Assembly: GCA_965112735.1 (NCBI GenBank)
Contig: OZ218953.1
Span: 620,001 to 684,000 of the forward strand
Reading direction: 5' to 3'
Length of the DNA stretch: 64,000 nt
Origin: Phaeosaccion multiseriatum
Taxonomy: Eukaryota > Protista > Ochrophyta, other classes
Numbering within the stretch: position 1 is the stretch's first letter; the number at the start of each line of letters is the position of its first letter. Both the position numbers and the translations under genes were made by a program. The notes under the pieces are model-generated. The model saw only the letters and a list, made by a program, of their open reading frames with translations. It did no database searches and was not told where the DNA came from. Below are positions 15,904 through 60,654 of this stretch, in pieces.

Positions 15904-18900
15904 ATGAATGGCAGGAAGGATGAGATGGCAGACCTTCCAAGGCTGGTGATTAAACTCGGCAGTCAAGATTTGCTGGGGAGGGCGCACGAGGTTGTGGTCG
16001 AGCTCGGGGAGAAGCCCTTCGCCTTCTGGTACGATGGAAAGGGTAGAGAGGCGGAGCAGTACAGCTTCAGGCGCATGTGGGATGAGGTAAGAGGACGGGA
16101 GAGAAAGCCCGCCGCCAGCAGTGAGCCAGGCAGTGGCTGTACTCTAGGCGACATCACCCGAGGGGCGAGTGCAAACACCACGCAGTAGAGGGGGGGGGTG
16201 CCCTCCTTCTCGTCTTTCATCTATCTCTCTCCTCCTTCACTATACCCGCTCTCCTCGACTCGCACTATCGAACGCGGCCTTATGCCTGCTTCTCGCTCCT
16301 ACCCCTTCTTAGGCGGGCAAGATTGCCTACATGCTGCGGGGGGAGTGGGGTGTGCCCAAGGGAGCCATGGTGGTGCTGTGCTACGGGCCGGGCTTGCACT
16401 TCTTCGCTGCCTTCCTCGGCTGCTTCAGAGCGGGCGTGGTGGCGGTGATGGTGTACCCGCCCGCTCCTCCGCTGTCCAAGTCACTGCCCAAGATGAGCAA
16501 GATCGTTGCGGACTGTAAGCCCCTGCTGTGCCTCACTGACTCCACGATAGCAGCTGTGCGCAGAGTGGACAGAGCCAATCCACTCTCTGACTCGCGCAAG
16601 CTGTGGCCTGAGGACCTCGACTTTAAGGCTACGGATGGGGGGCTGCTTCCGAGCTTCTTCTCCTCCTCGTCAGACGCAGGGAGGAGCTTTGACGAGCCGA
16701 GCGTGGCCGAGGAGGACCTGGCGTTCCTGCAGTACACGAGCGGTTCTACCGGTGACCCCAAAGGCGTGATGGTGACCTTCGGTGCACTCATGGCCAACGT
16801 GTACCTCATCGGCTGCCACCCCGCTACGGGGATGTGCCGCATGTGGCCCTCGGACAAGGCTGGAGACTCCTCCTCAGACCAGCCGGAGGCGAGCAGCAGC
16901 GGTCCAGCCGAGAGGTCTGCACCAAGTGAGCGGCTGCACAACGTGCCAACGACAGGCTTCTCGTGGTTGCCCCAATATCATGTGAGTAATGTGAGCGAGC
17001 GAGGGAGTAGAGGATAGACAAGAGAGGAAGGGAGGCATATATGTGCGGCCCGCGGCCCGACACCCCTCTGCTCTGCTTTGCTTCTCGTCTTTGTCGCGCC
17101 CCACTTACTACCCTGCTGCCATTGACTAGTGAGTGGGCCTTTGTCTTGACGGCACCCACCTCGTTCTCCTTCTTGAGTAGGCCTGCCATGCATTGACCAT
17201 ACTCTCTCTGTGCTTCTCAGGACATGGGTCTCGTACTCGGCCTCCTCACCCCCTTCCTGACGGGCATGACAATGCACTACATGTCCCCCGTGACGTTCAT
17301 TAAGCGGCCCCTGCTCTGGCTGGAGCTCGTCTCTCGGCACCGCGTGGAGTGGTCCGTCGCCCCCGACTTCGCCTACGCTCTCTGCGCCCGCTACATGGCC
17401 AAGGTGCGCGGCACTCGTAAGGAGCCCAAGCTGGATCTGTCCTCCGTGGTCACGCTGACGTCGGGAGCTGAGCCCATTCGAACGGAGACGGTGGAGAGGT
17501 TCGAAGCGGCCTTCCTGCCTTTCGGTCTCCGGCAGGGGTGAGTGAGTGGGTGGTAGTCACTTTGACCTGCGCTTGAGCGCGAGAGATCTGTCACGGCATC
17601 CTCCCTGCTGCCCCCGTTTTTGGGCCGCTGAGTCCTTTCTAACCTTGTGCCACTCTCCCTTGTACGTACCTCTCTTTGACTTGTACACTGGCAGGTGGTT
17701 CTCGGCTGCGTACGGACTCGCTGAACACGTAGTGTCAGGTAAGAAGCCTTCACAGAAGGGGGGGCGGGTCGAGGAGGAGGGACAGGCGGTGGTGCATTTC
17801 CTTCTCTCCGGATAGGACTCGGCCCAAAGGCTCATACATTCGTCCTCTTGTCTTCCCACCGCTTTGCGTTCTTTCTCCAGTCTCCTGGGCCACTGTCCTC
17901 GATCGATCACCTTCTCGCCCCGACCTGACCAGCGTCGGTTCCCCGGGCGACAGGCTTGACTTTATGGACATTCGAATCGTCAATCCTGACACCAGGGTCG
18001 AGGTCAGCGAAGCAGCAGCCACGGGAGAGATTTGGATCTCCTCCCCCTCTGTCGCCGCCGGGTACTGGGGCAAGCCCGAGCTGTCCAAGGAGACGTTTGG
18101 TGCCACACTTGCACTCCCCAGAGGAGGAGCAGAGGGAAGCGATGACAGTGATGTCTCAAGTTGCAAGTACCTGCGGACGGGCGACGTGGGCTTTGTGGAG
18201 GAGGGGTTGCTGTACATCTGCGGTCGCATCAAGGACCTCATCATCTTCAACGGGGTCAACCACTACCCGCAGGACGTGGAGTTTGCTGTGCAAGAGGCCT
18301 CCAGTGCCGTTCGGCAGGGCTGCATTGCGGCCTTCTCCTCCGACGAGACGGGAGGGGACGGCGTACTGGAGGTGGTGTTCGAGATCCGGCAGGAGCGAGA
18401 GAGCGAGGCTCAGGCAGTGGTGGAGGCCGCTCAAGCCGCATTGTCGTCCTGTCTGGGCCTCCGAGCGGCCAGGGTGGTGGCCGTCAAGCAGAAGACCATC
18501 CCCAAGACCACGAGCGGTAAGATCCGACGGCGGGCGACAAGGCAGGCGCTTCACGCTGGCGAGCTGCACATGGTGCGCGAGCTCACCGAGGACACCGCGA
18601 GTGGGCAAGAAGGGAGGGCGGTTGCGATGTCACAGGTGTGAACGCGCGAGGGTGGAGGCCTCTTACCTATGTCATTCTTTCTTTACCTCTCTTTGTGGTC
18701 TGTCGTGCTTGCCCTTCGCAGACCTCTTGATCCTGCTCTGGTGCGGGGAAGCGTTGCTGAGGAAGTTGTTGTTGGTCTCACCCACCTGTTTTGCCCGTTT
18801 CCTCACACACACCGACAGGGCCCTCCTCTTGATGACCTTGCAAGCACGCGCTCAACTCCAGAGGACAGGCCTCGCTCCGTCGAAGGCGAGGTCCCGGAAA

Positions 18901-21256
18901 GAAGAGGAGAACGAGAGAGCAGTCTGGCCATTCATTCTATGGAGAGCCTCGGTAGGCAGGCAAGGGTGGCCATCATCTTGGAGGAGATCATAGGCTTTGC
19001 AGTGGAGGTGACGCACAATCGAGCTCTGACCGCCGATGACCGCTTCATGGAGGCGGGTATGACCTCGGTGATGATGGCGGAGCTGGCGGTGATGCTCGAG
19101 GACTTTCTGGGCAGCGAGAGAACGGAGGAGGAGGGGGACAAGGACTTTGAGCTTGGGGCCGAGGCCTTCTTCGACTATCCGACACCTGCTCTCTTGGCGG
19201 CTCACGTAGAGACGACCCTGTTTGGAGAGGGAGAGGGGGACGACGCTTCTGCTGACGGACTGCCTCCTCCTCTTCTTTCTGATAGTGGCAGCGACATTGC
19301 AGTCATTGGGATGGCCTGTCGCTTCCCCGGCGGATGCAACAGCCCGGAAGAGCTCTGGGCGAAGCTGTGCAATGAGGAAGACTGCGTCACCGATGCGCCC
19401 TCTGAGCGAGGCTTGGGAGCGGGAGTGAGAGGTACGCTATAAGTCTGCCTTGCTGCACACACATGATTGATTGCGGCATGCATCTCAGCCTGTGTAGCCT
19501 GTATTCTGCAGTGCTTCTTAGCACCCTCCTAAACATCTGCTCTTCCTCTCCCCTAATAATGCGATCAGGAGGCTTCATCGACACCGTGGAAGCGTTCGAC
19601 AACGCATTCTTTGGTATGTCCATCGCCGAGGCGGAGGCCCAGGACCCCAACCAGCGCATCATGCTCGAAGTGGCGTATGAGGCTCTGCATAGAGCCGGCT
19701 ACGAGGGCAGGCACAGGCTTGAAGGTCACCGAGTCGGCGTGTTTGTGGGCGCGGCAGGGAGTGACTGGTCCGCGGTGCTGCGTGATAGCGCGAGTGGTAG
19801 GTCTCCCAACGCGTACACCCTGGCAGGTGCAAGCCGGGCTTGCTTCGCGGGCCGTATTTCGCACACGCTGGGCCTTGTCGGGCCATGCGAAAGCGTAGAT
19901 GCAGCATGCTCATCGGCATTTGTGGCCCTGAACAACGCTTGCAACAGCCTAAGACTGAGGCAATGCAGCTCTGCCGTGGTTGGCGGGGTCAATCTGCTGC
20001 TCCACCACCAAGGCTTTGGCGGCCTGGCAAGTGCGGGGCTTCTGTCTAAAGAAGGGTGAGTAATTGCGCTTTTGCGACTCTCGCTCTTTGGAATGCGCTG
20101 TCTTCATGAAGTCGCCTTCGCTGACATTTGACGTTGTAGGAGTAAGTACTCGTCGTACGAAGAGGAGCCTCTCTGTGTTAGCTGGCTTGCCTGGAATCGA
20201 AGGTCTTGACCGGAGCTTTTGACTCACCTAACAAACGTGCCTCCACTCTTCCCCGGACTCCTCTCCTCCTGCTTCCACACCATGCCTGCCCTTCCATAGG
20301 CGCTGCAGGTCTTTTGACGTTCGTGGGGATGGATATGTGCGCAGCGAGGGCAGCGGGGCTGTCGTGCTGAAGCTCCTGTGCGAGGCCATCAAGGATGAAG
20401 ACAACGTCCTCGCCGTCATCAAGGCAGCGGCTGTCAACCACAGCGGCGTCAGCATTTCTCTGTCCGCCCCCAAGGGAGCCGCCCAAGAGAGATTGGCGAG
20501 GAGCGCCCTACGGCAGGCAGGGTACGAGGGGAGAGAAGTGAGCTACGTCGAGGCCCACGCCACGGGAACCGTCATGGGCGATGCCATCGAAATAGGTAGG
20601 TACAGATCGAGGAAAAGGGGGATGGAGTGATGTCGAAATAGGGCCCTTTTGTGTGTCGTGAGCTGGGCTGTTGCAAATGCTTTCACTGGGGAGGAGGGTG
20701 GCGAGAGATATCACACCAATCTCACGCATATTTTCCTCCTTTCCTTCCTTTCATTCTCCCCTCCTTCCTTCCTTCCTTCCTTCCTTCCTTCCTTCCTTCC
20801 TTCCTTCCTTCCTTCCTTCCTTCCTTCCTTCCTTCCTTCCTTCCTTCCTCCCTTCCTCCCTCCGCCCCCCCCCCCTTCCTCCTTCCATTCCCTTCCTTTC
20901 TTCCTTGCCCCTTTCCTTCCTTCCTTCCTCCCTTCCTCCCTCCCATCCTTCCGTTCCCTTCTTTCCTTCCTTCCTTCCTTCCTTCCTTCCTTCCTTCCTT
21001 CCTTCCTTCCTTCCTTCCTTCCTTCCTTCCTTCCTTCCTTCCTTCGTCCCTCCCTCCCTCCCTTCCTTCCTTCCTCCCTCCCTTCCTCCCTTCCTTCCTT
21101 CATTCATTCCTTCCTTCCCTCCTTCCTTCGTTCCTCCCTCCCACCATCCTTTCCTCCCTTCCTCCCTCCCTTCCTTCCTTTCATTCTTCCCTTCCTCCTT
21201 CCGTTCCCTTCCTCCCTCCCGTCCTTCCTTCTTTCTTCTTCCTTCCTTTCTTTCGT

Positions 21257-21326
<70 letters not shown>

Positions 21327-24300
21327 TTCCTTTCCTGTCTCCTTCCGTTCCCTTCCTCCCTCCCTTCCTTCATTCCTTCCGTCTTTCCTTCCTTCCTTCC
21401 TTCCTTCATTCCTGCCTCTCTTCCTTCCTTCCTTCCTTCCTTCCTTCCTTCCTTCCTTCCTTCCTTCCTTCCTTTCTATTTTCCCTTCCTCCTTCCGTTC
21501 CCTTCCTTCCCTCCTTCCTTCCTCCCTCCCTCCCTCCCTCCACTCCTTCCTTTCATTCTTCCCTTCCTCCTTCCGTTCCCTTCTTTCCTTAATTTCCATC
21601 CTTCGTTCCTTCTTTCCTCCCTCCCTCCCTCCCTCCCTCCCTCCCTCCCTCCCTTCCTTCCTTCTTTCTTTCCTTCCTCCCTTCCTCCCTTCCTCCCTTC
21701 CTTCCCTCCCTCCTTCCTTCGTTCCTCCCTCCCTCCCTCTCTCCCTTCCTTCCTTCCTTCCTTCCTTCCTTCCTTCCTTCCTGCCTTCCTTTCATTCTCA
21801 CCTTCCTCCTTCCGCCCCCCTCCTCCCTCCGTTCCTTCCTTCTTCCATTCTTCCTTTCTTTCTTTCGTTCTTTTCTTCCTTCCTTCCTTTCTTCCTTCCT
21901 TTCTTCGTCCTTCCTTCTTTCTTTCCTTCCGTTTCCCCTTCCGCCGCTCTCTTCCGTCACTCCTTTCCTTCAATCCCTTGTTTCGCTCCCACAGGCGCTC
22001 TCAAGGCGGCTTTCACCTCCAACAGGCCTGAGGCCTTCCCCCTTGTAGTGGGCACCGTCAAGACTTCCCTGGGCCACATGGAGGGGGCGTCGGGAATGGC
22101 TCAGCTCATCAAGGCCATCCTGGTACTGCAGCACCGAGAGGCCCCAGCCAACCTTCACCTCAAGGAGGTCAACCCCAAGCTTAAGCTGGAGGGCGTGCCC
22201 GTCACGCTGCCCACCCGAAGGACGCCACTTTCCTCCTACTGCTCCGACGGCTCGACGCTGCTCGCGGGTGTCAACTCCTACGGTGTTGGCGGAGTACACG
22301 CCCACGTCATCTTGGGCAGCTATGGCGACATGAGGCCCGAAGGCGCAGCAGAGGGGGCTGACACCCCTTGGCAGGGGTTTCCCTCGTCGCAGCGGTTCCC
22401 CCTCCCGAAGAGAGCCACACCAGCACACGATTGCGTGGGTCCTGCATCTGCTCCTCCCCCAGCGAGAGACGCCCTCTCACAGTTACGCGGGACTCTCTCT
22501 GTGCAGTCACCCGAGGATCGCCACGGGACTCTGTTGGAGCTCCTCAAGGCGGTTGTGCTCAAGTGTGTTGATGCAGACATGCCACCGCTGGACGACAATG
22601 TGCCCTTGATGGAGGCAGGCCTGGATTCGATGGCACTTGAGGAGGTGCGCAATCGCCTTCACACCGACTTGGGGGTGACAGTCACCACTGATGTGCTCTT
22701 TGAGCACCCAAGTATTGCGGCGCTCGCGGGCTGGCTGGATGGCGAGGTAATGGGAACAGGAGGCACCAGGGGCTTAGCGCGAGAGCTGAGCCCCACTTCA
22801 ACTTGGCCTCACTTGGCGGTGGTGGGCATGGCGTGCCGCTTTCCAGGAGGGGTGACTTCACCAGAGGGTTTCTGGAACATGCTTTGCACGGGATTGGACT
22901 GCATCTCTACGGCTCCAGCAGACAGGTGGGGAGGCGGCTCGAAGGAGTGGCGAGGAGGCTTCATAGAGGGCGTCCACCTCTTCGACAACACCTTCTTTGG
23001 CATTTCGTCAGCGGAAGCGCAGAGTATGGACCCCAACCAGCGCGTGCTGTTGGAGGTGGCGTTCGAGGCGCTGCACCGGGCAGGCTATGACAGGAGCAGT
23101 CTCCGCAAGAGCAAGACGGGGACCTTCATCGGGTGCGCTGGGAGCGATTGGCTGCAGGCTAGAGTGAACCAAGGAGCAGCCAGCGAAAGAGATGGCGTGT
23201 ACGCTGCGTCGGGGGCCTCCATGTCCAATTTGGCCAACCGAGTGTCTTACACGCTAGGGTTGAATGGGCCCAGCTCAACTGTGGACACGGCGTGCTCGTC
23301 CTCCCTAGTCGCCCTGGACAGTGCCAGCAACAGCCTCCGATTGGGCAAGTGTGACGCAGCTGTTGTCGGCGGAGTGAACCTCCTGCTGAGCGAGGCGCCT
23401 TTCAAGCTCCTTTCTTCAGGAGGGTTTCTGTCACTAGACGGGTAAGTAAGTGAATGAGTGAGTGAGTGAGTGAGTGAGTGAGTGAGTGAGTGAGGGGAGA
23501 GGAAGGGAGGGAAGGGAGGGAAGGGGGGAAGGCGGGAAGGAAGAAGGGAGTGAGTGAGTGAGCGGGGGAGGGAAGGAGGGAGAGGAAGAGGGACAAGGAG
23601 GGAGGGAGACGAAGAAAGAAAGTGAGGGAGTGAAGGAGCGGGAAGTAGGGAGGAAGGAAGGAAGGCAGAAGGGAAGGATGGAAGGAAGGAAGGAAGGAAG
23701 GAAGGAAGGAGGGAAGAAAGGCAGAAGGGAAGGAAGGAAGAAAGGAAGGAAGGAGTGAGGGAGTAAGCAAATGAGCATTGTGGCCCATCAGGTAGATATG
23801 TGTAGTGTCCACCTTGATTAGACCCACTGCTTCGTTCAGTACGGCAGAGTGAGAGCCTCAAATCTGCGCTTCTCCTCCAGTCTCCTTACCTAATTCTCCC
23901 CTGTTTGCCCCTTCCGCCCTCACTCCCCAGGCGCTGCAAAACATTCGACAAGTCGGCCAATGGCTACGTCAGAGGCGAGGGGTGCGGAGCAATCGTGCTG
24001 AAGCGTCTAGATGACGCCCTTGCCGACAACGATGAGGTGCTGGCTGTCCTGCGAGGCTCGGCTGTGAACCACAACGGGCCCAGCGTGCGGATGACGGCTC
24101 CGAACCCTGGTGCCCAAAAGGAGCTCATCGCAGACGCCTTGATCGACGCTGGGCTGTATCCGAACGACGTGAGTCTCATCGAGGCGCACGGCACAGGCAC
24201 GTCGCTCGGCGACCCCATCGAGATGAGCGCTCTCCGAGGAGTGTTTGCTCACGACCGCGATGAAGCAAAGCCTTTAATTGTAGGGGCGCTCAAGACAAAC

Positions 24301-27300
24301 ATTGGGCACTTGGAGGGTGCAGCAGGGATTGCCGGATTCATCAAAGCCGTGTTGATGGCGCAGCACAAGACCGCTCCACCAAATTTGCACCTCACGGAGC
24401 AGAATCCCGAACTTGACACCGAGGGGTTTGCAGTCGTACTCCCATCTTCCTTGACCCCCTTACCGACCAACTCCAACGGCTCTGTGGTGATCGGCGTCAG
24501 TTCCTTCGGATTCGGAGGTACCAATGCGCACGCAGTGCTCAGCAGCTACGAACCAAAGGCGGGTGAGGACGGCGGCGAGGGCTTGTTGCAGCAGCATGAG
24601 CACCAAAGCAACAAAATCGCTCCAGTGGCATTCTTGTTCACTGGTCAGGGGTCGCAGTACGTGGGCATGGGCAGGGAGCTGTACGAGAGGGAGGGCGTGT
24701 TCCGCGAGTGCGTGCAGCGGTGCAGCAGGCTGCTCATGGAGCGAGCTTGGCTGGACAAGTCTGTGGTGGAGCTCATGTACCCCGCGGTCGCTGAGGAGGA
24801 GGAGGAGGAAAGTGCACAAGCGCTGCTGAAGGAGACGCGTTACTGCCAGCCGTGTCTGTTTGTGCTGGAGTACGCCCTGTGCGAGCTGTGGAAATCGGAG
24901 GGCGTGGAGCCGTCGATGGTGATGGGCCACAGTCTGGGCGAGGTGGTGGCGGCGTGCGTGGCTGGCGTCATGTCGCTGGAGGACGGGCTGATGCTGTCCG
25001 CCAGGAGAGGAGCCATCATGCAGGCCTGCCCTGAGGGCGATGGAGTGATGTTCGCAGTGAAGGCAGGCCGCGTGGCCACCTTGGCAGGCATCGTGGCTGC
25101 GAGGCTGGCAGGCGAAGTGGTGCTGGCGTCGTCGAATGGACCGAGCGCGAGCGTGATCTCTGGAGCGCGCTGCGCTGTGGACAATGTGGTGGAGAAGCTC
25201 ACGGCAGATGGGGTGGGCTGCAAGGCCCTGGAGGTGTCGCACGCCTTCCACTCTCCTCTGATGGAGCCCGCTGTACGTGCACTGGAGGAGGTTCTGAGGC
25301 AGGTGTCATTCAGCGCCCCACGCATTCCCCTGGTGTCCAACGTGTCGGGTGAGGTGGTGAAAGCGGAGGAGATGACGCAGGCGACGTATTGGGTGCAACA
25401 CATGCTGTCGCCAGTACTGTTCGCAGAAGGCATCCACACGCTGGTGGGGCACTGGATGGGAGACGGGAGGGGGGCTAACCTGAGCATCGTTGAGGTGGGC
25501 CCCAACCCTGTGCTGAGCAGCATGGGAGCCAAGTGCGAGCGTCGCGAGGGGCTGGCGTGGATCTCTTCCCTCACGCGAGGGAAGAGCTCCGAGGATTCGT
25601 TTGGAGCTGCCCTGGGCAGAGTAGCAGGGCCGGAGCATCTTAAGCTGTATCCGACTCGCCGACCGTTTCCTTGGTACAAGCCTCCGCTGGCTTTTATGCC
25701 GAATGGTGAGATGGTCCAGGAGGGAGACGGAAAGAGGCTTGCAAGCCCTTTCTCCCCTCACCTCAAGGACCTTCTCAAGGACCATGCCGTCAACAATGTG
25801 GTGATCATTCCGGGGGTGACGTACATTGAAGTGGGCGTCGTCGCTGCTCTAGGAGGAAGACAGATCGGGGTAGAGCAGCAGGTAGTCCTGCAAGGAGCCA
25901 GCTTTGTGGTTCCACTGGAGATTGAGGGTTTCCAACAGGCCGGCACGGACCAAGTGCAAAGCCGCCATACAATGATCTGTGCCGGGATGAGCGCCCTTCA
26001 CGCGGCAGATGGATGCATGCAGTTCTTCGGAGGTGCCACGGGCGACAAGGGCACCACGGCAAGAATGAAGTACGTGTCTGTCATGGAGAGAAGCACGCCG
26101 CGTGCTTCGCTGCACGTGGAATCCATTCGAGCTAGAGTTGGCGAGCAGGACGTATCGAGTGAGCTCTACAAGCATTTCGCAGACGCCGGCTTCCAGTACG
26201 GCCCCCGCTTTCAGCGGACCCGCCACATGTACGGAGGGGACGGAGAGGTTCTGTCGGTCGTGTGTGCCATGGATGAGGAGCTGTGCGAACCGTGGGAAAT
26301 GAAGGGCTTTGCTCTGCACCCCGCGGTGCTGGACAATGCTACCCATTCCATTATGCAAGCGCTGCCAAGGAAGCTGCTCAAGGAGGGGGGGGGCTCTCCA
26401 TTCCTACCTGCTGGCTTTGACGAGGTGGTCGTTTCCGCCTCCATGACGGGAAAGAGCGTGTGGGTGCACACGAAGCTGAGTGAGGTCCAGTCAGTGGCGG
26501 ACAGCGTCAAGTTTGACATCCGCATTGCAGACTTCGACAGCAAGGAGGTGCTCGTGGAGATGCGGGGCTTCCGCGTGCAGCGGGCGAAGGGCTTTGTGCG
26601 TGTCAGCCCCGTTCGTCGTGCAGTGTACGCATTGGAGTGGCAGGCCGCTGAACCGTCTTCACAGGAGGAGGCCCCTAATAGTGATACTGACTCTACTGAG
26701 GCGGCGGCGCCACAGAAGTGGCTAGTGCTTATTCCACAGGATGAGGGGGGGGAGGGAGAGACTGCAGTCATTGCTGTGATACGGCGCTGTGTTCCGGAGA
26801 ACGTGGACGTGCACTCTCGATATGGGGGCATGGACGCCTCCTGGGATGATGGTGCTCTTCTTCTTGGAGAGGATGAGTGGGCTCGCGTCTTGTACGTGCT
26901 GATACCCCGAGCTGGCGAAGCAGGCGCAGAAGGGGGCCAGCAAGCACGAGCGGCCTACGCCCTGATGGCTCTACTCAGGAGCCTGTCCACTGCGTCGAGT
27001 GTGCCGCTGACGGTTTTGACGAGAGGCGTCCAAAGCGGCGAGGACTGGCGTCACAGCTGGGTCACAGGTCTGGTGCGGACTGCGAGGATGGAGTGCCCTT
27101 CCATGCGGATTGGTGTGGTGGACCTGAACGACAAGGAGTCCCTAGACAGCGAGCTTGCCTTAGGCTTGGCCTTCCCTCCTTCCACAGAAGATGTGTGGGT
27201 ACGGGATGAACAGTGCTGGACGCCTCAGCTTGCACACCCAGCTTTGACTCTTCCGTTTTCCCTGGAGCTTAAGGCAAGAGGTAGTATAGCCAATGCCTTT

Positions 27301-37200: not shown

Positions 37201-37221
37201 TTGGCCGAACCTTCCGTCGCC
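31369..37221 (+). repeat. Direct segmental duplication, copy 1 (~5.85 kb: ACP-T1, intergenic spacer, T2)
   Basis: Near-identical to 48848-54691 (offset about 17.47 kb). Many six-frame ORF translations of the two copies are identical, e.g. 34663..35811 and 52133..53281. Confidence 0.95.
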
Positions 37222-49500: not shown

Positions 49501-51703
49501 CGGCTTTCTTACCCTCGGCACACCCGGCATCACTTTGTTCTACAAGCTGCTGGGTGCCGACGTCTCCTGGCGCTGCTCCATTTCCACCTTTCTCCGAGAG
49601 TTTGACCTCATCACGATTGGGGCCGGCGCTTCGGTGACTGGCTCGCTGTGTCCTCGCTCCTTCACGCCGTCAAGCATGGTCTTTCGCAGCATTGTTGTGG
49701 GTATGGGCGCAGAGGTGGAGGCGGGGGCTGTGGTGTACGGTGGGGTGAAGGTGGGCGAGGGCACACAGGTCGCTCGCCTGTCCGTTGTATACCCCCTGAC
49801 GCGCATTCCTGCTGGTGATGGCGTGTGGGAGGGCAACCCGGCGCAGAGGAAACAGAGCCGCCGCAGCGCCGAGGAGGGGGGTGGACGAGCTAGGATGACC
49901 GACAGAGAGAGACACTTGGCAAAGGGCAGTGACGGATGGGCGAATGAAGCCCTCCAACTCCTGCAAGGCGTGGTGCGTATGGTGCTAATTACGGCTTCTG
50001 TCATGCTCGCAGCCTTCTTTAGCTGGATGCCCGCCGTTGCGTACACCTTCATCGGTGTGTCAAGAGACTTTCGATACGCAGGAGTCATGAGCACGGTGTT
50101 TGGAGTGTATGGGGCTCTCCTGACTCTTGCCCTGTACCTGGTCCTGCTCAAGTGGGTCATTGCGCCGAGCTGCCTCCTTCGACCCGGCGTGTACACCGAC
50201 AACTTTGGAAGGGCGCTTCGTCGATGGTACCTCGGCAAGCTTCACAGCCAGGTGTCGGGCTACGTGCTCGTGTTCGCCCGCTGGCGCCTGTTCGACTGGT
50301 GGGGCAAGGCTCTGGGTGTGCGCATGGGAAGGGGGGCTATCAACTCGAGTGATGGCGCGTACAATCCCGAGACGGCCCACCTCATTACGTTTGGTAAGAA
50401 GGGAGGACAGGTCTAGCGGAGTGTATGTGGGAGGAGGGGGGATGCTTGGTACCAGCCGCGTTTTGCCACCATGGCTATTCGCCATGCTATGCGTTGCTTA
50501 GAGCGAAGGGCCTTTTTTCTCTCATCCCTTGTCTCTACTGAACGGTCTTTTACCACATACCCCAATAAATCCACAGGAGATGATGCTTTTGCTTCGTATG
50601 CCGCATTCACTACCGATGAACCGCTGGGGAGGGGCAGTGCCAACATTGGTAGTGCCACTGGAGGCAGCGCCGGGGGGGCAACACGTGTGCGAGGGACCTG
50701 CACCGTTGGGGACGGAGCGCTCCTCGGGTACATGTGCGTCATGGGGCCTGGTGCTGCCATTCCGGCACAGCAAGGCGTTGAAATGTTCACGGCTGTAGCA
50801 GCTGGGGACACAGTCGTGTCGACATCGTGGGGCCAGGGCGCAGTAGTGAAGGGAGGGAGGGAGGATGCCGCCTCATCTGCAGCGCTCTCGGGACCCGGCG
50901 CACTCACAAACGGAGACATCGAGCGTTGGGCCGCCTTTGTCGCCAGAGAGACATGGGGCACGCTGCTGTGGCTGGCGACCCATGTGGGGAGTCTGGTGGT
51001 GGTGGTGGAGGTGGGGAGGCACCTAAACCAAAGCGTGGGGAAGAAGCGCGGCATGAGCTTTGAGGCCATGCTGCCCCTGTACGGGGCCGTGTGCGGGTGT
51101 GCAGGAGCCCTTGCCCTCACTCTTCTCTTGGTGGCTTCCAAGTGGCTGCTCGTCGGTGACTTCAGCCGTGGTGCGGACCCAATCACGGGAGCGTGCATGT
51201 CCTCACAGAATGTTTCTCGGAGCGCGCGGACGCAGTACTTCCGCCTTCTGACCAGGATGCGTCTCTTCTTTCTGCTTTACATTCTGACGCCTTTATTCAG
51301 CGGTACATGGCTGTACAATCTGTACGTTCGAGCGTCGTGTGCGCGGCCCAAGGATATCTCGCTCGAGGCGTTGGTGTTGGGGGTGGATGTGTTCGACTTT
51401 GACTTTCTCACCTTGGAAGCAGGTGCCATACTTGACATGGGCAGTGAAGTCAAGGGTCACGTGCTTCGCCAAAGAGCTGCTGGTGCTGGGGGAGACGGCA
51501 CTACCGGGCTGCTGGTCATGTCCCCCTGTAGAGTGAAGGCAGGGGCAGTCCTTCACCCCTACGCCTTTGTCACCCACGGCACCGTCGGCAGTCGGGCCGA
51601 GCTCTTCGCCTACAGTCCGCCGCTCATGGGGCAGGGGCTGCGCGATGGAGGCAAGTACGGTGGCCGCGGAGTGCCAGGATTGCTCAAGAGCAAGCTATCG
51701 TGA
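43439..51703 (+). CDS. Gene C: FAAL(b)-ACP-KS(y)-ACP-Pls/PosA-like terminal domain (type T1); AT-less, about 2218 aa
   Basis: Exons 43439-43576, 43868-44551, 44740-45056, 45259-45302, 45425-46179, 46372-46984, 47125-47611, 47738-48033, 48198-50393, 50577-51703 (6657 nt, in frame). KS DTACSS/HATGT/GHMEG; ACP GMDS. Confidence 0.88.
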
Positions 51704-54691
51704 GACTGCTGGAGCGAGGGCTCGACTATTGTATCGCTCAATTTGTATGTAGTACAGCTCTTAGTTCAAGGTTTGCAAGGGAGGGCCCTTCCATATCATG
51801 AAAATAGTCAAGAGACTCGGTCGGAGGAAGAGAGGGAGGGAAGGAAGTAAAGCAGTGTATTATGTACTTAATAGCCCGTAGAGGAGCGTCGGGTGTCTCT
51901 CCAGACAACACATCAGTCCTCAAGACGCAAATGTCGCGAGGCATCTCCCCCTAACAACAAGAGACAGCCAAATACCCACAGGCTCTTGAGAATACTTTAC
52001 TCTTTCTACTACGCCTCGACTGTCAGTAAACGCCCTCATCTGTGTGAGTACACAAGGCCTTCATCTCTCTCTCTCTCTCCCTGGGCTGTGCACAAGGAGG
52101 TGCCGCAAAGAGTCACCGTGTGTCGTTGATGGTTGTGCTGCAGCACGCACGGCACTCAGAGGAGTCCTGCTCGCTGTAGCAGGGGGCACACGCCTCCTTC
52201 GCCTGAAACCTTCTCCCAGTCAGCACAACTCTGCTCTTCCTCTCAGACCACGCGGGCGCTGCTTCGCGCTCCCAGTGTCAGCTCGTACCCCTTCGCTCCC
52301 ATCTTGCTCACATCCAGTGTCGCGCCCTCACCCAGCACGAAGCCGGGAAGGGTCAGCGAGCGAGCGTTCAGCCTCGCCCCCTTGCCGACGCGCACGCTCT
52401 CAACATACATTACCCCACCGTGCTCCAGAATGTGGCACTGGGGCATGGCGTGCCTCTCCACCACAACGTCATCCTCCAGGGTGAGCAGGTCGGGGTCTGG
52501 AACGAAACGGCAGTCAATGTGCACATTCGATCCGGCTCTCAGTCCCAGCAGGCGCAGATACCACGGAAGGAGGGGTGAGCCCGCGAGCAGCTCGACGACA
52601 GTTCCCATGGCGAGAGTCTGGCAGGCTGTGGCAGAGGTCCAGCGAACGTACTCCAAAGACGATCGTGTAAAGGAGTGCGCCTTCCTCCGGGTGGGCATCA
52701 CGGCCCACTTCAGTGCAGCAGAAGTCACCGCCACCAGCGCGAGGAACAAGAGCAACCACAGCGGTAGCGTCACGAGGATGCTCTTGTCACCCAGCTGCAG
52801 CACGACTTTACTGATGGCGAGACTCACTAACGCTGCCAACGTGTACAGATGGAGAGCAAGTACACACGGCTGCAGCACCGGCATGAGCAGCATGGCGAAT
52901 ACCTGCAATGCACTGAGCTTCTCCGTCGACGCGCTGCCGGTTGCAATTTGCAGCAAAGGGCTGCCTCCAATCTGCCCCACCGCCGTACTGGCCAGACTCG
53001 TTTGCAGCCTGCGGTCGCTCATGCTTCGTCGGGGTTCGTCCACTCTGACGGGTTGCCCGCCAGGAGCATTCACCCTGGAAATGATATCCACGGGAGGGGG
53101 CAGGGAAGACACCCCTCCCTGTCCTCCGAGGCAGGTGGACCGTGCTTGGAGCTCGTCGCTCTCTCGCACAACACTCAAAGCTCCAACCTCACAGTCCGCT
53201 GGAATGCTCGCGCCGGGCAGCGCCACGCAGAAGGCTCCGAGTAGCGCGTTGTCACCGATTCGCACTGTGCCCGTTACGTAGCGTTGCCTGCCTTTCGCGT
53301 CGACCTTAAACATGCCCGTGATGGGGGCGGACGGAATGCCTAGATGAGACTGCGTCCCGACGGAGAGCAACTCCGGCTCGTACGGGTACTCTGCGAAACT
53401 CGTCACACCCAGGCCAAAGCGAGCCCCCATGCTGGCCAGCCAAGCGTTCTCTGCCTGTGTCGCTACTGTGAAGGGCATCACCGTGCGAGACGTAAATGCC
53501 ATCAGGTCGGCCACCAAAGCCCTACGAAGAGCCTCGAATGAGGAGACTGGCGTCGTTCGGGGCTTGCGCGGTAGCAACATGGCCCACTTGATGAGAGCCA
53601 CAATGGTGCACATTGCAGCTGTGTACACCACCCACGTCAGTGCTCCAGGCCACAGCGCCCCAAACAAGTAGTGTTGCTTCAGCACCCGCATCAGGACGAG
53701 GTTCACAAGGCCCCGGTTGATGCCCGGGAAGACGGCGAAGAAGGGGATAGACAGCGGGCCCGCCAGATTCCATGCCATCAACAGAGCGAGTGTCGCTGAA
53801 GAGCCTTCTAGACCAGATGCGAAACCCAGTGCTCTCGTTTCGTCTGTGGGGTAGATGCCGCCAACGCTCAGAAGCTTGAAGAGGGCCCTCGAGGCAATGA
53901 AGGTCCCCACTGCCACCACAAGCACCACGAAGTACAGCCTCAGGACAGTCCATAGGATGTCCTCCACCGCAGATGAAGTACGTGCCGACAGTGACGCTTC
54001 ATTCACACCCATTCCGCCCTTCGGGCGGCCCCGTACTTCTGCGAGCGCTCCCGCTGCGTGCTCGCTTGGTAACCTTCCTCCCTGATTCACTACCACCCAC
54101 GGCTCCACACTGCAGCGGGCATCGACAGAAGCTGTGCCAAAGGAGACGTCTCTGATGCCCACAATGTGCGTTCTGAAGATCACTCCCTTGTTCACCACAG
54201 AGTTGTCGCCGATTACTACCCACTCTGGGTCGTACAGCTCCGTGGTGTCCAAAATCACGTTGCAACCAATCGTGGCTCCCAGGGCCCGGTAGTACAACAC
54301 CAGCAGAGGGGAGCGACGCAGGAGGAAGCTGTGGTTACTGGCAGTCCAGCCCATGAGCCGCTGCATCGTCCACCAAGCGATGAACTGAGCAGAGCGCCTC
54401 TGAATCTTATCCGCTGTACATCCAGCCCTCACTGGTGGCACAAGGAGGCGCTTCGAGAGGATGACAACTGCCATCTGGAGGAGGAGGTAGGTGAGCCATC
54501 CAGCCGGTACTACGACCCCTCCAGCGAATAGCAGCGACCGGTCCTGTGCGTACTTGAACACACATCTGACGAAGCCGTACATGGGTAGGAGGATTGCCCA
54601 GGACAGGTAGGCGAAAGCACATACCCACAGCAGCGCCAGGAGCCACTGGGGAGCGTCTTGGACTCGATCCTTGGCCGAACCTTCCGTCGCC
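48848..54691 (+). repeat. Direct segmental duplication, copy 2
   Basis: Near-identical to 31369-37221. Confidence 0.95.
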
Positions 54692-57600
54692 ACTGCCGCG
54701 CGTCCGCGTTGGCCAGCCTCAGGGCTGCTGCTACCAAGCGAAGTAGTACGATTACTACTTGTACCAACGCCCCGACCACCCCGGCCCCTGCCGCCTTCCT
54801 TCTCCTCTCCTTCTTCGCTCACGGTAGCAGGAGGAGTCGCCACGCGGGAGCACAAGTGGGAGAATAACCTCGAGAAAGACGGATGAGAATATATGTCCGT
54901 TGGTCTGACGGCCGCGTCGAGCTGCAAAGCCTTGGTGAGCTGGGCACACAAGCCCACAGTTGAAAGGGAACCTGACAGCCTGTCCAGGAGAAGCTCCTTA
55001 CTCGAGCGTAGCTCTTCCAAAGTGGGCGGGAACGTCCAGTCGTCCTCCTTTCCTGCTGCCATTCTGTTGTACACGTCCGTGAATACACGAAAGATGTGCT
55101 CCTCCCTCGCCTGCACGCGAAAGCGTTGCTGCCAAGCGAGCTCGCCAGGCCCTACAGAGCCTGCTGGGGAAGGTGGGCTAAAGGTGTCTCCGAACTTTTT
55201 GACCCAGTCCTTGGCAGGCAGGAGGGCCACGTCAGCCAAAGGAGCAGGCCGCATCGCAGCGGCATCAGAGAGGACGTCTCCCGCTGGGGGAGGAGGAGAT
55301 GTAGGACCCTTGCCATCATGTGTTGGTGCTGCTCTCTGCGGGAGGGGAAACTCTCGCGACGAGGGGAACCCTTGCCAAGGGGTATCACCTCGCTCTGCTG
55401 CGCCTTCGGGCCTCATGTCGCCATAGCTGCCCAAGATGACGTGGGCGTTTACTCCGCCAACCCCGTAGGAGTTGACACCTGCGAGCAGCGTTGAGCCGTC
55501 GGAGCAACAGGAGGAAAGGGGCGTCCTTCGGGTGGGCAGCGTGACGGGCACGCCCTCCAGCTTAAGCTTGGGGTTGACCTCCTCCTGGTGAAGGTTGGCT
55601 GGGGCCTCTCGGTGCTGCAGTACCAGGATGGCCTTGATGAGCTGAGCCATTCCCGACGCCCCCTCCATGTGGCCCAGGGTAGTCTTGACGGTGCCCACTA
55701 CAAGGGGGGAGGCCTCAGGCCTGTTGGAGGTGAAAACGGCCTTGAGAGCGCCTAAGATGCATCACACGATGGTAAGGGGGGAGGGAGGGAGGACATGAAT
55801 GAGCCTTGGTTTAACCTCTCTCAACGCCATCTCACATTCTTCGAGCTCACAAGAGAGAGAGTTTACGATGCCTCTTGTTGCCACCTCTCCGCCCTTTGCG
55901 GCCTTCACAACTTACCCATTTCGATGGAGTCACCAATAACGGTTCCTGTGGCGTGGGCTTCAACGTAGCTCACTTCTCTCCCCTCGCACCCTGCCTGCCG
56001 TAGTGCCCTTCTCACTAAGCTCTCCTGGGCGGTTCCCTTGGGGGCGGATAGAGAACTGCTGACGCCGCTGTGGCTGACAGCCGCTGCCTTGATGACGGCG
56101 AGGATGCGGTCCCCGTCCTTGATGGCCTCAGGCAGGAGCTTCAGCACGACGGCCCCGCTGCCCTCGCTGCGCACATATCCATCCCCACGAGCGTCAAAGG
56201 ACTTGCAACATCTGAAGTACGAGAGGGGACATAGCAAGGAGAGGTGTGTGCTCAATGACTGTTTCTCCCGTGTCTCTCCCGACTTTCTCTCGAAACCGTA
56301 AGCCAACCCAAAGGCGCCCCATTAAAAACACACTCACCCTTCTTTAGATAGAAGCCGCGCATCGGCCAGGCCGCCAAAGGCTTGGTGGTGGAGCAGCAGG
56401 TTCACACCGCCAACGATCGCAGAGCGGCTCTCCCTGAGTCTCAGGCTTTTGCACGCGTTGTTCAGAGCCACTATTGCCGACGAGCATGCTGTATCTACGC
56501 TTTCGCATGGACCTTCAAGGCCGAGTGTGTGCGAGATGCGGGTAGCGATGCAAGCTCGGCTTGCCCCCGCCAGCACGTACGGGTTTCCCTTGGTGAGTTG
56601 TGGGTTCTCGTAGAGAAGAGTAGGCCAGTCACTCCCTGCCACGCCCACAAACACGCCGACTCGGTGCCCTTCAAGCCTGTGCCTGCCCTCGTAGCCGGCT
56701 CTATGCAGAGCCTCATACGCCACTTCGAGCATGATGCGCTGGTTGGGGTCTTGGGCCTCCGCCTCGGGGATGGACATACCGAAGAATGCGTTGTCGAACG
56801 CTTCCACGGTGTCGATGAAGCCTCCTGATCGCATAATTAGGGGAGAGGAAGAGCAGATGTTTAGGAGGGTGCTAAGAAGTACTGCAGAATACAGGCTACT
56901 CAGGTTGAGCTGCATGCCGCAATCAATCATGTGTGTGCAGCAAGGCAGACTTATAGCGTACCTCTCACTCCCGCTCCCAAGCCTCGCTCAGAGGGCGCAT
57001 CGGTGACACAGTCTTCCTCATTGCACAGCTTCGCCCAGAGCTCTTCCGGGCTGTTGCAGCCAGCGGGGAAGCGACAGGCCATCCCAATGACTGCAATGTC
57101 GCTGCCACTATCAGAAAGAAGAGAAGGAGGCAGTCCGTCAGCAGAAGCGTCGTCCCCCTCTCCCTCTCCAAACAGGGTCGTCTCTACGTGAGCCGCCAAG
57201 AGAGCAGGTGTCGGATAGTCGAAGAAGGCCTCGGCCCCAAGCTCAAAGTCCTTGTCCCCCTCCTCCTCCGTTCTCTCGCTGCCCAGAAAGTTCTCGAGCA
57301 TCACCGCCAGCTCCGCCATCATCACCGAGGTCATGCCCGCCTCCATGAAGCGGTCGTCGGCGGTCAGAGCTCGATTGTGCGTCACCTCCACTGCAAAGCC
57401 TATGATCTCCTCCAAGATGATGGCCACCCTTGCCTGCCTACCGAGGCTCTCCATAGAATGAATGGCCAGACTGCTCTCTCGTTCTCCTCTTCTTTCCGGG
57501 ACCTCGCCTTCGACGGAGCGAGGCCTGTCCTCCGGAGTCGGGCGCGTGCTTGCAAGGTCATCAAGAGGAGGGTCCTGTCGGTGTGTGTGGGTGAGGAAAC

Positions 57601-60545
57601 GGGCAAAACAGGTGGGCGAGACCAAAAACAACTTCCTCAGCAGACGCGTTCCCGCACCAGAGCAGGATGAAGAGGTTATTCGCACCTGTGACATCGCAAC
57701 CGCCCTCCCTCCCTGCCCACTCGCGGTGTCCTCGGTGAGCTCGCGCACCATGTGCAGCTCGCCAGCGTGAAGCGCCTGCCTTGTCGCCCGCCGTCGGATC
57801 TTGCCGCTCGTGGTCTTGGGGATGGTCTTCTGCTTGACGGCCACCACCCTGGCCGCTCGGAGGCCCAGACAGGACGACAATGCGGCTTGGGCGGCCTCCA
57901 CCACTGCCTGAGCCTCGCTCTCTCGCTCCTGCCGGATCTCGAACACCACCTCCAGTACGCCGTCCCCTCCCGTCTCGTCGGAGGAGAAGGCCGCAATGCA
58001 GCCCTGCCGAACGGCACTGGAGGCCTCTTGCACAGCAAACTCCACGTCCTGCGGGTAGTGGTTGACCCCGTTGAAGATGATGAGGTCCTTGATGCGGCCG
58101 CAGATGTACAGCAACCCCTCCTCCACAAAGCCCACGTCGCCCGTCCGCAGGTACTTGTGACTTGAGACATCACTGTCATCGCTTCCCTCTGCTCCTCCTT
58201 TGGGGAGTGCGAGTGTGGCACCAAACGTCTCCTTGGACAGCTCGGGCTTGCCCCAGTACCCGGCGGCGACAGAGGGGGAGGAGATCCAAATCTCTCCCGT
58301 GGCTGCTGCTTCGCTGACCTCGACCCTGGTGTCAAGATTGACGATTCGAATGTCCATAAAGTCAAGTCTGTCGCCCGGGGAGCCGACGCTGGTGAGGTCG
58401 GTGCGAGAAGGTGATCGATCGAGGACAGTGGCCCAGGAGACTGGAGAAAGAACGCAAAGCGGTGGGAAGACAAGAGGACGAATGTATGAGCCTTTGGGCC
58501 GAGTCCTATCCGGAGAGAAGGAAATGCACCACCGCCTGTCCCTCCTCCTCGACCCGCCCCCCCTTCTGTGAAGGCTTCTTACCTGACACCACGTGTTCAG
58601 CGAGTCCGTACGCAGCCGAGAACCACCTGCCAGTGTACAAGTCAAAGAGAGGTACGTACAAGGGAGAGTGGCACAAGGTTAGAAAGGACTCAGCGGCCCA
58701 AAAACGGGGGCAGCAGGGAGGATGCCGTGACAGATCTCTCGCGCTCAAGCGCAGGTCAAAGTGACTACCACCCACTCACTCACCCCTGCCGGAGACCGAA
58801 AGGCAGGAAGGCCGCTTCGAACCTCTCCACCGTCTCCGTTCGAATGGGCTCAGCTCCCGACGTCAGCGTGACCACGGAGGACAGATCCAGCTTGGGCTCC
58901 TTGCGAGTGCCGCGCACCTTGGCCATGTAGCGGGCGCAGAGAGCGTAGGCGAAGTCGGGGGCGACGGACCACTCCACGCGGTGCCGAGAGACGAGCTCCA
59001 GCCAGAGCAGGGGCCGCTTAATGAACGTCACGGGGGACATGTAGTGCATTGTCATGCCCGTCAGGAAGGGGGTGAGGAGGCCGAGTACGAGACCCATGTC
59101 CTGAGAAGCACAGAGAGAGTATGGTCAATGGCAGGCCTACTCAAGAAGGAGAACGAGGGGGGGGGGGTTAAGACAAAAGGCCCACTCACAAGTCGATGGC
59201 AGCAGGGTAGTGAGTGGGGCGCGAGGGAGCAACAGCAAAGACGAGCGAGAAGCAAAGCAGAGCAGAGGGGTGTGGCTGGCCGCACATTATTGCCTCCCTT
59301 CCTCACGCTTGGGGCTTCATTCCTTGTCATCTGTTTCCCTGTTTCTCCTCCCCTCTATCCTCTACTCTCGACCCTGGACAAGATTACAGTGTGCGCCGGC
59401 CGTAATCAGTAATCAGCCCCCGGCTGGCGCATAACCAGTAATCAGGCCGGCTGGTCACCGCTGTTTCTCTCTCTAACTCACATGATATTGGGGCAACCAC
59501 GAGAAGCCCGTCGTTGGCACGTGGTGCAGCCGCTGACTTGGCGCAGGCCTCTCGCCTGGACCGCTGCTGCTCGCCTCGGGCTGGTCTGAGGAGGAGTCTC
59601 CAGCCTTGTCCGAGGGCCACATGCGGCACATCCCCGTGGCAGGGTGGCAGCCGATGAGGTACACGTTGGCCATGAGTGCACCGAAGGTCACCATGACGCC
59701 TTTGGGGTCGCCGGTAGAACCACTCGTGTACTGCAGGAACGCCAGGTCCTCCTCGGTCACGCTCGGCTCGTCAAAGCTCCTCAATGCGTCTGACGAGGAG
59801 GAGGAGGAGAAGAAGCTCGGAAGCAGCCCCCCATCCGTAGCCTTAAAGTCGAGGTCCTCAGGCCACAGCTTGCGCGAGTCAGAGAGTGGATTGGCTCTGT
59901 CCACTCTACGCACAGCTGCTATCGTGGTGTCGGTGAGGCACAGCAGGGGCTTACAGTCCACCACTATCTTGCTCATCTTGGGCAGTGACTTGGACAACGG
60001 AGGAGCGGGCGGGTACACCATCACCGCCACCACGCCCGCTCTCAGGCAGCCCAGGAAGGCCGCGAAGAAGTGCATGCCCGGCCCGTAGCACAGTACCACC
60101 ATGGCTCCCTTGGGCACACCCCACTCCTCCCGCAGCATGTAGGCAATCTTGCCCGCCTAAGAAGAAGGGGCAGGAGAAGCTTAGCTAAGCAAGGCCGCGT
60201 GAGATAGAGTCGTGGAGAGCGGGGGAGTGAAGGAGGAGAGAAGAAAGACGAGGAGGAGGTCACCCCCCCCCTCTACTACGTAGTGTTTGCACTCGCCCCT
60301 CGAGTGATGTCGTCTAGGGACACATCGGTGGCGGCGGGCTTTCTCTTCCCTCTTACCTCAGCCCACGTGCGCCTGAAGCTGTACTGCTCCGCCAGTCTAC
60401 CCTTTCCATCGTACCAGAAGGCGAAGGGCTTCTCCACGAGCTCGGCCACAACCTCGTGCGCTCTCCCTAGCAAACTTTGTTGCCCTGCCCTTTCTTGCCT
60501 GCCGGGTCCCCGCAGCCTTGGAAAGTCTGGAGGCTCGTCCATCAT
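52243..60545 (-). CDS. Gene D: FAAL(a)-ACP-KS(y)-degenerate ACP-Pls/PosA-like terminal domain (type T2); AT-less, about 2294 aa
   Basis: Exons 60545-60357, 60156-59482, 59100-58784, 58626-58583, 58440-57686, 57574-56962, 56824-56338, 56211-55916, 55751-52243 (6885 nt, in frame). Exon lengths 317/44/487/296 are shared with A, B and C. Confidence 0.88.
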
Positions 60546-60555
60546 ACCATTCCGG

Positions 60556-60577
60556 CTGCTGCAGGCTGCTGCTGCTG

Positions 60578-60635
<58 letters not shown>

Positions 60636-60654
60636 CTGCTGCTGCTGCTGCTGC
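60556..60654. repeat. (CTG)n / (CAG)n microsatellite upstream of gene D
   Basis: Directly visible. Confidence 0.9.

Follow-up and report, generated by a model that had tools for sequence, protein, structure and literature searches.

Two types of Pls/PosA-superfamily terminal domain on a predicted FAAL-primed polyketide synthase chassis in a four-gene cluster of Phaeosaccion multiseriatum

The window analyzed here is a 64,000-nucleotide stretch (positions 620,001 to 684,000 of contig OZ218953.1, assembly GCA_965112735.1; G+C ~60%) from the ochrophyte Phaeosaccion multiseriatum, and all coordinates below are counted from its first letter. Four large, intron-bearing eukaryotic genes lie between positions 15904 and 60545, in the order A(+), B(-), C(+), and D(-). 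Pfam and NCBIfam profiles laid over the long open reading frames (ORFs) give all four the same domain order, namely an AMP-binding domain with a DIP2-like C-subdomain of the fatty acyl-AMP ligase (FAAL) type, a PP-binding acyl carrier protein (ACP), a ketosynthase (KS; KS_N/KS_C), a second carrier region, and a hydrophobic C-terminus of ~830 amino acids, which in each gene matched Hexapep and TIGR02353. The C-terminus comes in two forms, T1 in genes A and C, and T2 in genes B and D, and it is the presence of these two unrelated terminal types on one polyketide synthase (PKS) chassis that is new at this locus. A tblastn search with P0005, a 2855 amino acid metagenomic relative of order FAAL-ACP-KS-acyltransferase (AT)-ketoreductase (KR)-terminal domain, yielded collinear blocks in A, B, C, and D, and thus agrees with the profile scans on the four-gene FAAL-ACP-KS-ACP-terminal cluster that an earlier, sequence-only reading had described.

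Gene A (15904..34218, plus strand) is the longest, reading FAAL-ACP-KS-ACP-KS-AT-DH-ER-KR-ACP-KS-ACP-T1 in Pfam (DH, dehydratase; ER, enoylreductase); relative to the other three it contains the insert ACP-KS-AT-DH-ER-KR-ACP-KS, as the sequence-only reading had anticipated in assigning it extra modules. Its exon 1 begins with an ATG at 15904, and its exon borders are partly resolved. A 2092 amino acid ORF at 23905..30183 (plus strand) covers the C-terminal part of a KS, AT, DH, ER, KR, ACP, and the N-terminal part of the next KS, and holds both the sole AT and the sole reducing loop of the cluster. Gene B (34773..42850, minus strand) is FAAL-ACP-KS-(weak ACP)-T2 by Pfam and NCBIfam, and a putative GT..AG model of eight exons predicts a protein of ~2141 amino acids. 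Gene C (43439..51703, plus strand) is FAAL-ACP-KS-ACP-T1; its predicted model runs 1804 amino acids to the first stop past an unmodelled intron in T1, which extrapolates to ~2200. Gene D (52243..60545, minus strand), again FAAL-ACP-KS-(weak ACP)-T2, would encode ~2300 amino acids. A conserved first exon gives the N-terminus, and the predicted start codons of A and D, at ~15904 and 60545, respectively, provide the two borders of the cluster.

Gene integrity was judged from open frames and canonical GT..AG junctions. By that measure the genes are intact, as had been claimed, except that the T1 domains of A and C are interrupted by a predicted 108-nt intron (GTAAGA...TTAG) at 32915-33022 and 50394-50501, respectively, excision of which restores a domain of 829-830 amino acids. 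Several splice junctions had close runner-ups (for instance 41847/41636 in B, 47544/47660 in C, and 56405/56283 in D), which makes the exon borders and the protein lengths approximate. The linkage of KS to terminal domain does not depend on splicing in B and D: single ORFs at 34773-38162 (B, 1129 amino acids) and 52243-55698 (D, 1151 amino acids) are unbroken through the KS end, a KS C-terminal extension, the carrier region, and the entire terminal domain, and the predicted last exon of B (38053-34773) likewise joins the KS C-terminus, the carrier region, and T2. The terminal domain is thus not a separate gene, and the fusion is real.

In known polyketide and fatty-acid megasynthases, the finished product is freed by a thioesterase, reductase, condensation, or similar soluble domain. 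In agreement with the sequence-only reading, no thioesterase (TE), reductase (R), or nonribosomal peptide synthetase (NRPS) condensation (C) domain was matched by Pfam or NCBIfam in any ORF of the cluster. By its matches, the loading domain of the cluster genes is of the FAAL type. Its top PDB matches were 7r7e-g (a PKS-embedded FAAL domain), 3kxw, FadD23, FadD32, and FadD28, with CoA ligases and NRPS adenylation (A) domains ranking below them, and PF23024, the FAAL/DIP2-type C-terminal subdomain, was matched at E values of 7e-7 and 1e-6. The Cys-His-His triad is kept in all six KS domains (D(A/T)ACSS, H(G/A)TGT, and K-x-x-x-GH). The best solved KS relative, at 160 bits, was 7zma, which we take to be a trans-AT PKS bimodule; the runners-up, cis-AT module KS domains among them, reached 112 bits. 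A cis-AT system would have an AT in each extending module, and here there is a single AT, in gene A, for six KS. This AT carries the motifs GHSLG and HAFH, the latter being the malonyl signature of AT domains.

The carrier that precedes T1 is a clear PP-binding match (E 1.7e-10 in A and 1.5e-10 in C). The region that precedes T2 in B aligns with a Nannochloropsis ACP, with the serine in register. The motif around that serine reads LDSLS in B (37400-37450) and SGSLS in D (54900-55000), and the linkers of the D carrier contain insertions of ~50 and ~20 residues relative to B.

On profile and predicted-fold evidence, the terminal domain is a member of the Pls/PosA superfamily. The TIGR02353 profile (NRPS_term_dom) matched the B and D ORFs in three stretches at E 1.1e-47 (162.9 bits). 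T1, which was scanned as two separate ORF pieces, matched at E 4e-21 in A (74.9 + 18.1 bits) and E 2e-20 in C (73.1 + 19.0 bits), the second pieces being weak. Neither T1 nor T2 reached the curated cut-off of 423.1 bits; the homology is significant, but at the superfamily rather than the equivalog level, and it is only to that extent that the profile check bears out the sequence-only assignment. Pls of Streptomyces albulus makes epsilon-poly-L-lysine and PosA of Acinetobacter baumannii makes delta-poly-L-ornithine; their terminal domain of ~730 residues has six transmembrane helices in three pairs, with segments of ~180 amino acids between them, and its three left-handed beta-helices are packed as in a trimeric sugar-nucleotide acyltransferase (PMC10522769). 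The Phaeosaccion domains share this layout. Hydropathy places six transmembrane helices in three pairs in both T1 and T2, those of T2 lying at ~30-56/67-102, 256-291/364-388, and 607-646/648-681. For T2, an alignment of 60 sequences gave an AlphaFold2 model (mean pLDDT, the per-residue confidence, 82.8; pTM, the predicted template-modelling score, 0.87) of three units, in each of which a pair of long helices and some short ones accompany a beta-helix ladder; the long helices are at 30-63/68-98, 256-291/341-386, and 602-648/652-679, and the strand ladders are predicted at pLDDT >90. The three repeats of a transmembrane segment plus beta-helix noted earlier thus hold, as three helix pairs in T1 and T2 and as three modelled ladders in T2.

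Foldseek aligned residues 26-828 of the T2 model with residues 612-1318 of the PosA AlphaFold model over the whole domain (E 2.2e-30, TM-score 0.64), and models from AlphaFold database clusters matched T2 at TM-scores of 0.62-0.74. The remaining Swiss-Prot and PDB fold matches covered single repeats of T2, and were to maltose/galactoside O-acetyltransferase, NodL, and serine acetyltransferase. For terminal domains of this type, no solved structure turned up: a PDB sequence search with T2 returned weak single-repeat matches to hexapeptide acetyltransferases, and the best Foldseek match of the T2 model in the PDB had an E value of 1.6e-3. As in Pls and PosA, a C-terminal domain of ~730-830 amino acids directly follows a carrier, there is no TE or condensation domain, and the His/Asp motif of the third repeat is retained. 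The feed is different. Pls and PosA are supplied by an amino-acid A domain and a thiolation domain, whereas here the loader is FAAL-type and a KS stands between it and the last carrier; the host is a eukaryote, the genes have introns, and the donor would be a lipid chain instead of a cationic amino acid.

The two terminal types are sharply distinct from each other, and the earlier view that all four genes share one kind of C-terminus needs to be narrowed to membership of the Pls superfamily. T2 is 830 amino acids long in gene B (34776..37265, minus strand), where TIGR02353, hydropathy, the AlphaFold2 model, and the PosA fold all give three repeats of a transmembrane-helix pair and a left-handed beta-helix; the copy in D (52246..54691, minus strand) is 99.96% identical in DNA (blastn) and differs by a single residue in 815. 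T1 lies at 31621..34215 in gene A (plus strand; 829 amino acids without the predicted intron, with the E 4e-21 match to TIGR02353 falling on repeats 1-2) and at 49103..51700 in gene C (plus strand). The two T1 copies are 96.9% identical in DNA and differ at 43 of ~830 residues, with no stop codon and no frameshift. Between T1 and T2, only short stretches align, at 21-36% protein identity. Within T1, clustered substitutions and an indel of two residues fall at T1 positions 747-764, around the repeat-3 His (A 33900-34010; C ~51400-51500).

The motif of repeat 3, E/D-x-D ... H-x-x-E (consensus TEFDL...QTHLFEDR), which is near-invariant in the family, is complete in T2 (D747, D749, H768, and E771); T1 keeps both Asp residues and the His (WGHVL in gene A, codon 33979..33981, plus strand), and has Arg in place of the Glu. 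His768 (codon 34962..34964 in B and 52432-52434 in D, minus strand) is the invariant His of Pls/PosA-type proteins. T2 also has a conserved His in each of the other two repeats, His190 in repeat 1, at the position equivalent to His768 (36696..36698 in B and 54166-54168 in D, minus strand), and His464 in repeat 2 (35874..35876 in B and 53344-53346 in D, minus strand), and these two are conserved only in a clade of FAAL/PKS-linked proteins. Within that clade, His occupies positions 190, 464, and 768 in 18, 18, and 17 of 20 sequences, respectively; among 43 Pls-type proteins with an A domain the corresponding counts are 6, 1, and 43, and 36 of the 43 have Phe in repeat 2. The signature of T2 is thus H/H/H and that of T1 is F/F/H, the pattern of Pls, in which repeat 3 alone has the His. 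To our knowledge, this distinction between terminal types has not been described before. The three-His signature is an observation on aligned residues and does not itself imply a mechanism.

Phylogeny and database ranking separate the types in the same way. In a quick maximum-likelihood tree with long branches, T2 fell inside a set of eight rows that contains every FAAL/PKS-linked row and is separate from the 43 A-type rows (Shimodaira-Hasegawa-like approximate likelihood ratio test, 97), and the top 14 phmmer matches of T2 were all from the FAAL/PKS side. T1 fell outside the FAAL/PKS-linked set on a branch of 4.45 changes per column, and its position in the tree is unsettled; because that branch is so long, the affinity of T1 rests on phmmer ranking and residue patterns. 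Its best matches, in the large database together with the fetched proteins, were bacterial proteins named 'Pls/PosA family non-ribosomal peptide synthetase'. By these comparisons, the cluster holds two unrelated terminal types, the T2 type being eukaryotic and FAAL/PKS-linked, and the T1 type bacterial Pls-like.

The array carries the marks of recent duplication. Self-blastn revealed a segmental duplication in which 31369..37221, the convergent 3' halves of A and B with their spacer, is repeated at 48848-54691 with 98.05% identity over 5859 nt, and an inverted repeat of 90.4% between 38719..42874 (the 5' half of B) and 47617-43415 (the 5' half of C), where the genes stand head to head. Across the four genes, identity in the FAAL-ACP-KS parts ranges from 85-97% and is distributed as a mosaic, which suggests gene conversion among them. 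Similarity between T1-type and T2-type genes ends just after the KS (C 48530 / D 55419), and each terminal domain was thus exchanged as a unit with its own carrier domain. Intron presence varies among these recent paralogues: in D, a continuous exon (56962-58388) includes the FAAL C-terminus, ACP1, and the start of the KS, and the matching site in B (39926-40160) and C (46117-46371) has an intron of ~235-255 nt. Tandem repeats that are CT-rich and degenerate have swollen a gene A intron at 20603-21990, between the first KS exons, to ~1.4 kb (GC skew -0.52, AT skew -0.62, self-matches of 76-81%); the introns of the paralogues at that place are short.

When T2 was searched exhaustively as a profile, 918 relatives were obtained; just seven of them had E < 1e-30, and the best was 41% identical. 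The high-scoring ones are eukaryotic and lie behind a FAAL or a PKS. They include PKS fragments of Nannochloropsis gaditana, the multimodular 6656 amino acid NSK_004922 of N. salina, MpACOS18 of Marchantia, and proteins of Chrysophaeum and Phaeothamnion, as well as proteins of Adiantum, Selaginella, Cryptomeria, and Eucalyptus that begin with a FAD amine-oxidase/HemY-like domain at the N-terminus and have a catalase-like segment inserted. The T2 clade thus spans Nannochloropsis/Microchloropsis, other ochrophytes including pelagophytes, and land plants from liverworts to Eucalyptus. In the plant relatives P0004, P0007, P0018, and P0024, the catalase-like segment follows the first terminal-domain repeats; together with the N-terminal oxidase-like domain, it hints at oxidized fatty-acid substrates in the land-plant branch. 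P0005, also a T2 relative, is encoded by one intron-free gene of 8.5 kb (L001 10001-18568) on a eukaryote-like contig that also bears annexin, Nramp, and hybrid histidine-kinase genes, and that probably comes from a eukaryotic alga.

The nearest full-length relatives of T2, at 26-28% identity and in the same clade, are the Nannochloropsis/Microchloropsis PKSs and P0005 (NSK_004922 being one), which share the FAAL-ACP-KS...-T2-type order. They differ in having AT and KR domains or several complete modules, and neither an AT-less FAAL-ACP-KS-ACP-terminal form nor T1 on such a chassis was seen among them. The ochrophyte 'PKS-Clade II' of Nannochloropsis, drawn by Balzano et al. in 2019 as AMP-PPT-KAS-AT-KAR plus transmembrane helices and proposed to form 3-hydroxy fatty acids, precursors of wall-bound diols (PMC6872974), is alike in its FAAL-ACP-KS-type order and membrane helices, a comparison made by published description only. 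In the land-plant proteins (MpACOS18 and those of Selaginella, ferns, Cryptomeria, and Eucalyptus), FAAL and ACP feed a three-His T2-type domain as well, but a KS is absent, and FAD-oxidase and catalase-like domains are added. Patil et al. (2021) reported FAAL-like domains of unknown function that in plants lie between a HemY and a catalase domain (PMC8460268); a 2026 survey of FAALs lists eukaryotic FAAL-PKS and plant 'NRPS-like' clusters (PMC12820801), and a 2026 preprint on Symbiodiniaceae still calls NRPS_term_dom a domain of unknown function. The link to Pls for the C-terminus of the algal and plant relatives is not drawn in the searchable text of these publications. No characterized PKS or other enzyme with a FAAL-PKS-Pls-type-terminal architecture was found in the full-text literature, so that part of the sequence-only reading stands; the architecture itself is not unique, having uncharacterized relatives in Nannochloropsis/Microchloropsis, other ochrophytes, and land plants. 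FAAL-primed PKSs with a Pls/PosA-superfamily terminal unit are a widespread, uncharacterized eukaryotic family, and this locus is one member of it.

Two further groups of enzymes are informative for what the cluster might do. In the cyanobacterial olefin synthase (Ols), in CurM-type FAAL-ACP-KS-AT-KR-ACP-ST-TE synthases (ST, sulfotransferase), and in mycobacterial FadD32 with Pks13, whose logic the front end of the cluster genes resembles, a FAAL loads an ACP with a fatty acid and a KS condenses once, and the Pks13 product is released by transfer to trehalose at the membrane, not by hydrolysis. These systems differ from the Phaeosaccion genes in that release is via a sulfotransferase-thioesterase or a thioesterase, an AT is present in cis, and there is no beta-helix membrane domain. 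The trimeric hexapeptide acyltransferases (maltose/galactoside O-acetyltransferase, NodL, serine acetyltransferase, and LpxA/LpxD) have a fold that each T2 repeat matches. Their chemistry uses a pantetheine thioester donor, which for LpxA/LpxD is acyl-ACP, and a His-assisted attack by OH or NH2. They are soluble homotrimers, whereas T2 has three diverged repeats in one chain and six transmembrane helices.

Few other genes could be recognized in the window. The flanking ORFs on both sides of the cluster gave no matches beyond a WRKY19-type zinc finger and a fragment of a KIF9-like kinesin; the former is a 615 amino acid ORF at 13505-15352, just upstream of gene A, with four WRKY19-type zinc-finger motifs (PF24906, E 2.9e-20). 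A short-period tandem array at 1005-1365, near the left end of the window, has self-matches offset by multiples of 6 nt, and a similar array (85-89% identical) lies on the opposite side of the cluster at 61267-61635, inside an ORF at 60397-61698.

As had been proposed from the letters, we infer a function of the terminal domain in acyl transfer or polymerization. In the reading we favor, and consider probable, each gene encodes a membrane-anchored assembly line that releases its chain by acyl transfer to a membrane-side nucleophile. The FAAL would adenylate a fatty acid and load it onto ACP1, and the KS would condense the fatty acyl group with a malonyl unit to leave a 3-oxoacyl chain on ACP2. 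The malonyl unit would be supplied in trans, since an AT is missing from B, C, and D and their KS looks trans-AT-like. In gene A, the full reducing module, the malonyl-type AT, and the further KS would lengthen the chain before release. The terminal beta-helix domain would carry out the release step, an amine or hydroxyl nucleophile attacking the carrier-bound thioester; instead of being freed as an acid, the chain would end up in amide or ester linkage to an acceptor located at or within the membrane. This is argued by analogy: in Pls, the terminal domain links the donor on the carrier with an acceptor that is free, which is an acyl transfer (PMC10522769), and both in Pls and in the trimeric hexapeptide acyltransferases a His-containing site at the beta-helix interface may activate the nucleophile. 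Since the carrier is cytosolic and the helices are in hairpins, the catalytic repeats would face the cytosol, and the helices would form a path into or across the membrane. One chassis would then have two off-loading units, the three-His T2 in B and D and the one-His T1 in A and C, which suggests that the same acyl chain is delivered to two acceptors or fates.

Several observations weigh against this transfer-release mechanism. T1 is without the family-invariant G518, G537, G731, G735, and P623 as well as the HxxE Glu, and with the invariant glycines and the Glu lost, it is possibly altered catalytically or inactive. P0005 has Gln at the repeat-3 His position, and that His is possibly dispensable in the FAAL/PKS-linked clade; moreover, we know of no experimental proof of a catalytic role for these His residues, even for Pls. 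The ACP that the sequence-only reading had placed before every terminal domain, clear before T1, is weak before T2 in B (PP-binding E 0.0024, 18.5 bits, with a cut-off of 20.8), and in D it was undetected by the PP-binding profile, with GSL in place of DSL; the carrier of gene D may be impaired. The lack of an AT in B, C, and D leaves the malonyl supply unaccounted for, there being no trans-AT among the flanking ORFs, and no acceptor, product, or accessory gene could be read from the window flanks, where trans-AT, phosphopantetheinyl transferase, transporter, and tailoring enzyme were all unmatched. Public sequencing runs (one sample, library type unstated) over 34700-40600 had putative introns at exon depth and zero splice joints; the runs are therefore taken as genomic DNA.

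A different reading keeps the chemistry of Pls entire: the terminal domain would be an iterative polymerase, the FAAL would load a bifunctional monomer such as a hydroxy- or amino-fatty acid, units on the carrier would be added one after another to a free chain, and an aliphatic polyester or polyamide would be threaded through the membrane to become an algaenan- or cutin-like wall polymer. All characterized members of the superfamily do polymerize, T1 has the Pls-type residue pattern with its best matches to Pls/PosA, and relatives of the domain occur in algaenan-producing Nannochloropsis and in land plants; the hydroxy-fatty acid precursors of wall-bound diols proposed for Nannochloropsis PKS-Clade II would suit it too (PMC6872974). 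What makes it rather unlikely is that a FAAL-KS without a KR predicts a 3-oxoacyl chain with no obvious nucleophile, that there is no sign of a bifunctional FAAL substrate, and that the T2 clade, with its differing His pattern, stands apart from all A-domain polymerase-type proteins. The degenerate carrier upstream of T2, the several invariant residues gone from T1, and the absence of the repeat-3 His from P0005 would all be expected if the terminal domain were non-catalytic, a membrane anchor or export conduit, with the chain freed by a separate thioesterase, acyltransferase, or reductase encoded elsewhere. T2, however, keeps its His/Asp/Glu motif, its copies in B and D are 99.96% identical against 85-96% for other parts of the two genes, the beta-helix repeats are modelled at very high confidence and conserved from algae to plants, and no release enzyme was found among the window ORFs; we hold a mere anchor to be very unlikely.

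Least probable, in our judgment, is that the four-gene arrangement is functionless as such, the cluster being, wholly or in part, either a recently duplicated array whose copies are decaying or not expressed, or an artefact of paralogues that were collapsed or expanded in the assembly. The copies are indeed very recent (98% over 5.9 kb, with T2 at 99.96%), the mosaic identity is that expected under gene conversion, the public runs, read as genomic DNA, show no RNA signal, and their short-read contigs fragment across the region. On the other hand, in all four copies the frames are long and open, the KS triads intact, and the splice sites canonical, the T1 copies have accumulated their 43 differences without a stop codon or frameshift, and the region has similar depth, and few differences, in the contigs of four runs. 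Transfer to a membrane-side acceptor thus remains the reading we prefer. A bolder reading that we regard as unlikely, and offer as speculation, is that these proteins, the plant and eustigmatophyte relatives included, are long-sought membrane polymerases or ligases that make or attach the resistant, algaenan-, cutin-, or sporopollenin-like aliphatic material of cell walls, joining carrier-bound oxo- or hydroxy-fatty acyl units at the membrane, and that the three-His domain is an unrecognized PKS release/export class of algae and land plants.

At the position where a megasynthase would have its release domain, the Phaeosaccion genes have a membrane-embedded triple beta-helix domain, the only characterized relatives of which polymerize cationic amino acids. 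If the domain is catalytic, this would be a new PKS release logic that couples chain completion to transfer to an acceptor at or across the membrane. The cluster is also a natural experiment, in which a near-identical loading and extension chassis is joined to two very different ACP-terminal units, and His190, His464, and His768 are precise targets for mutagenesis in T2. A function established for one T2 member would annotate a broad, unexplained family found in Nannochloropsis, pelagophytes, Phaeothamnion, and land plants, and could bear on the origin of resistant aliphatic wall polymers or of unusual membrane lipids.

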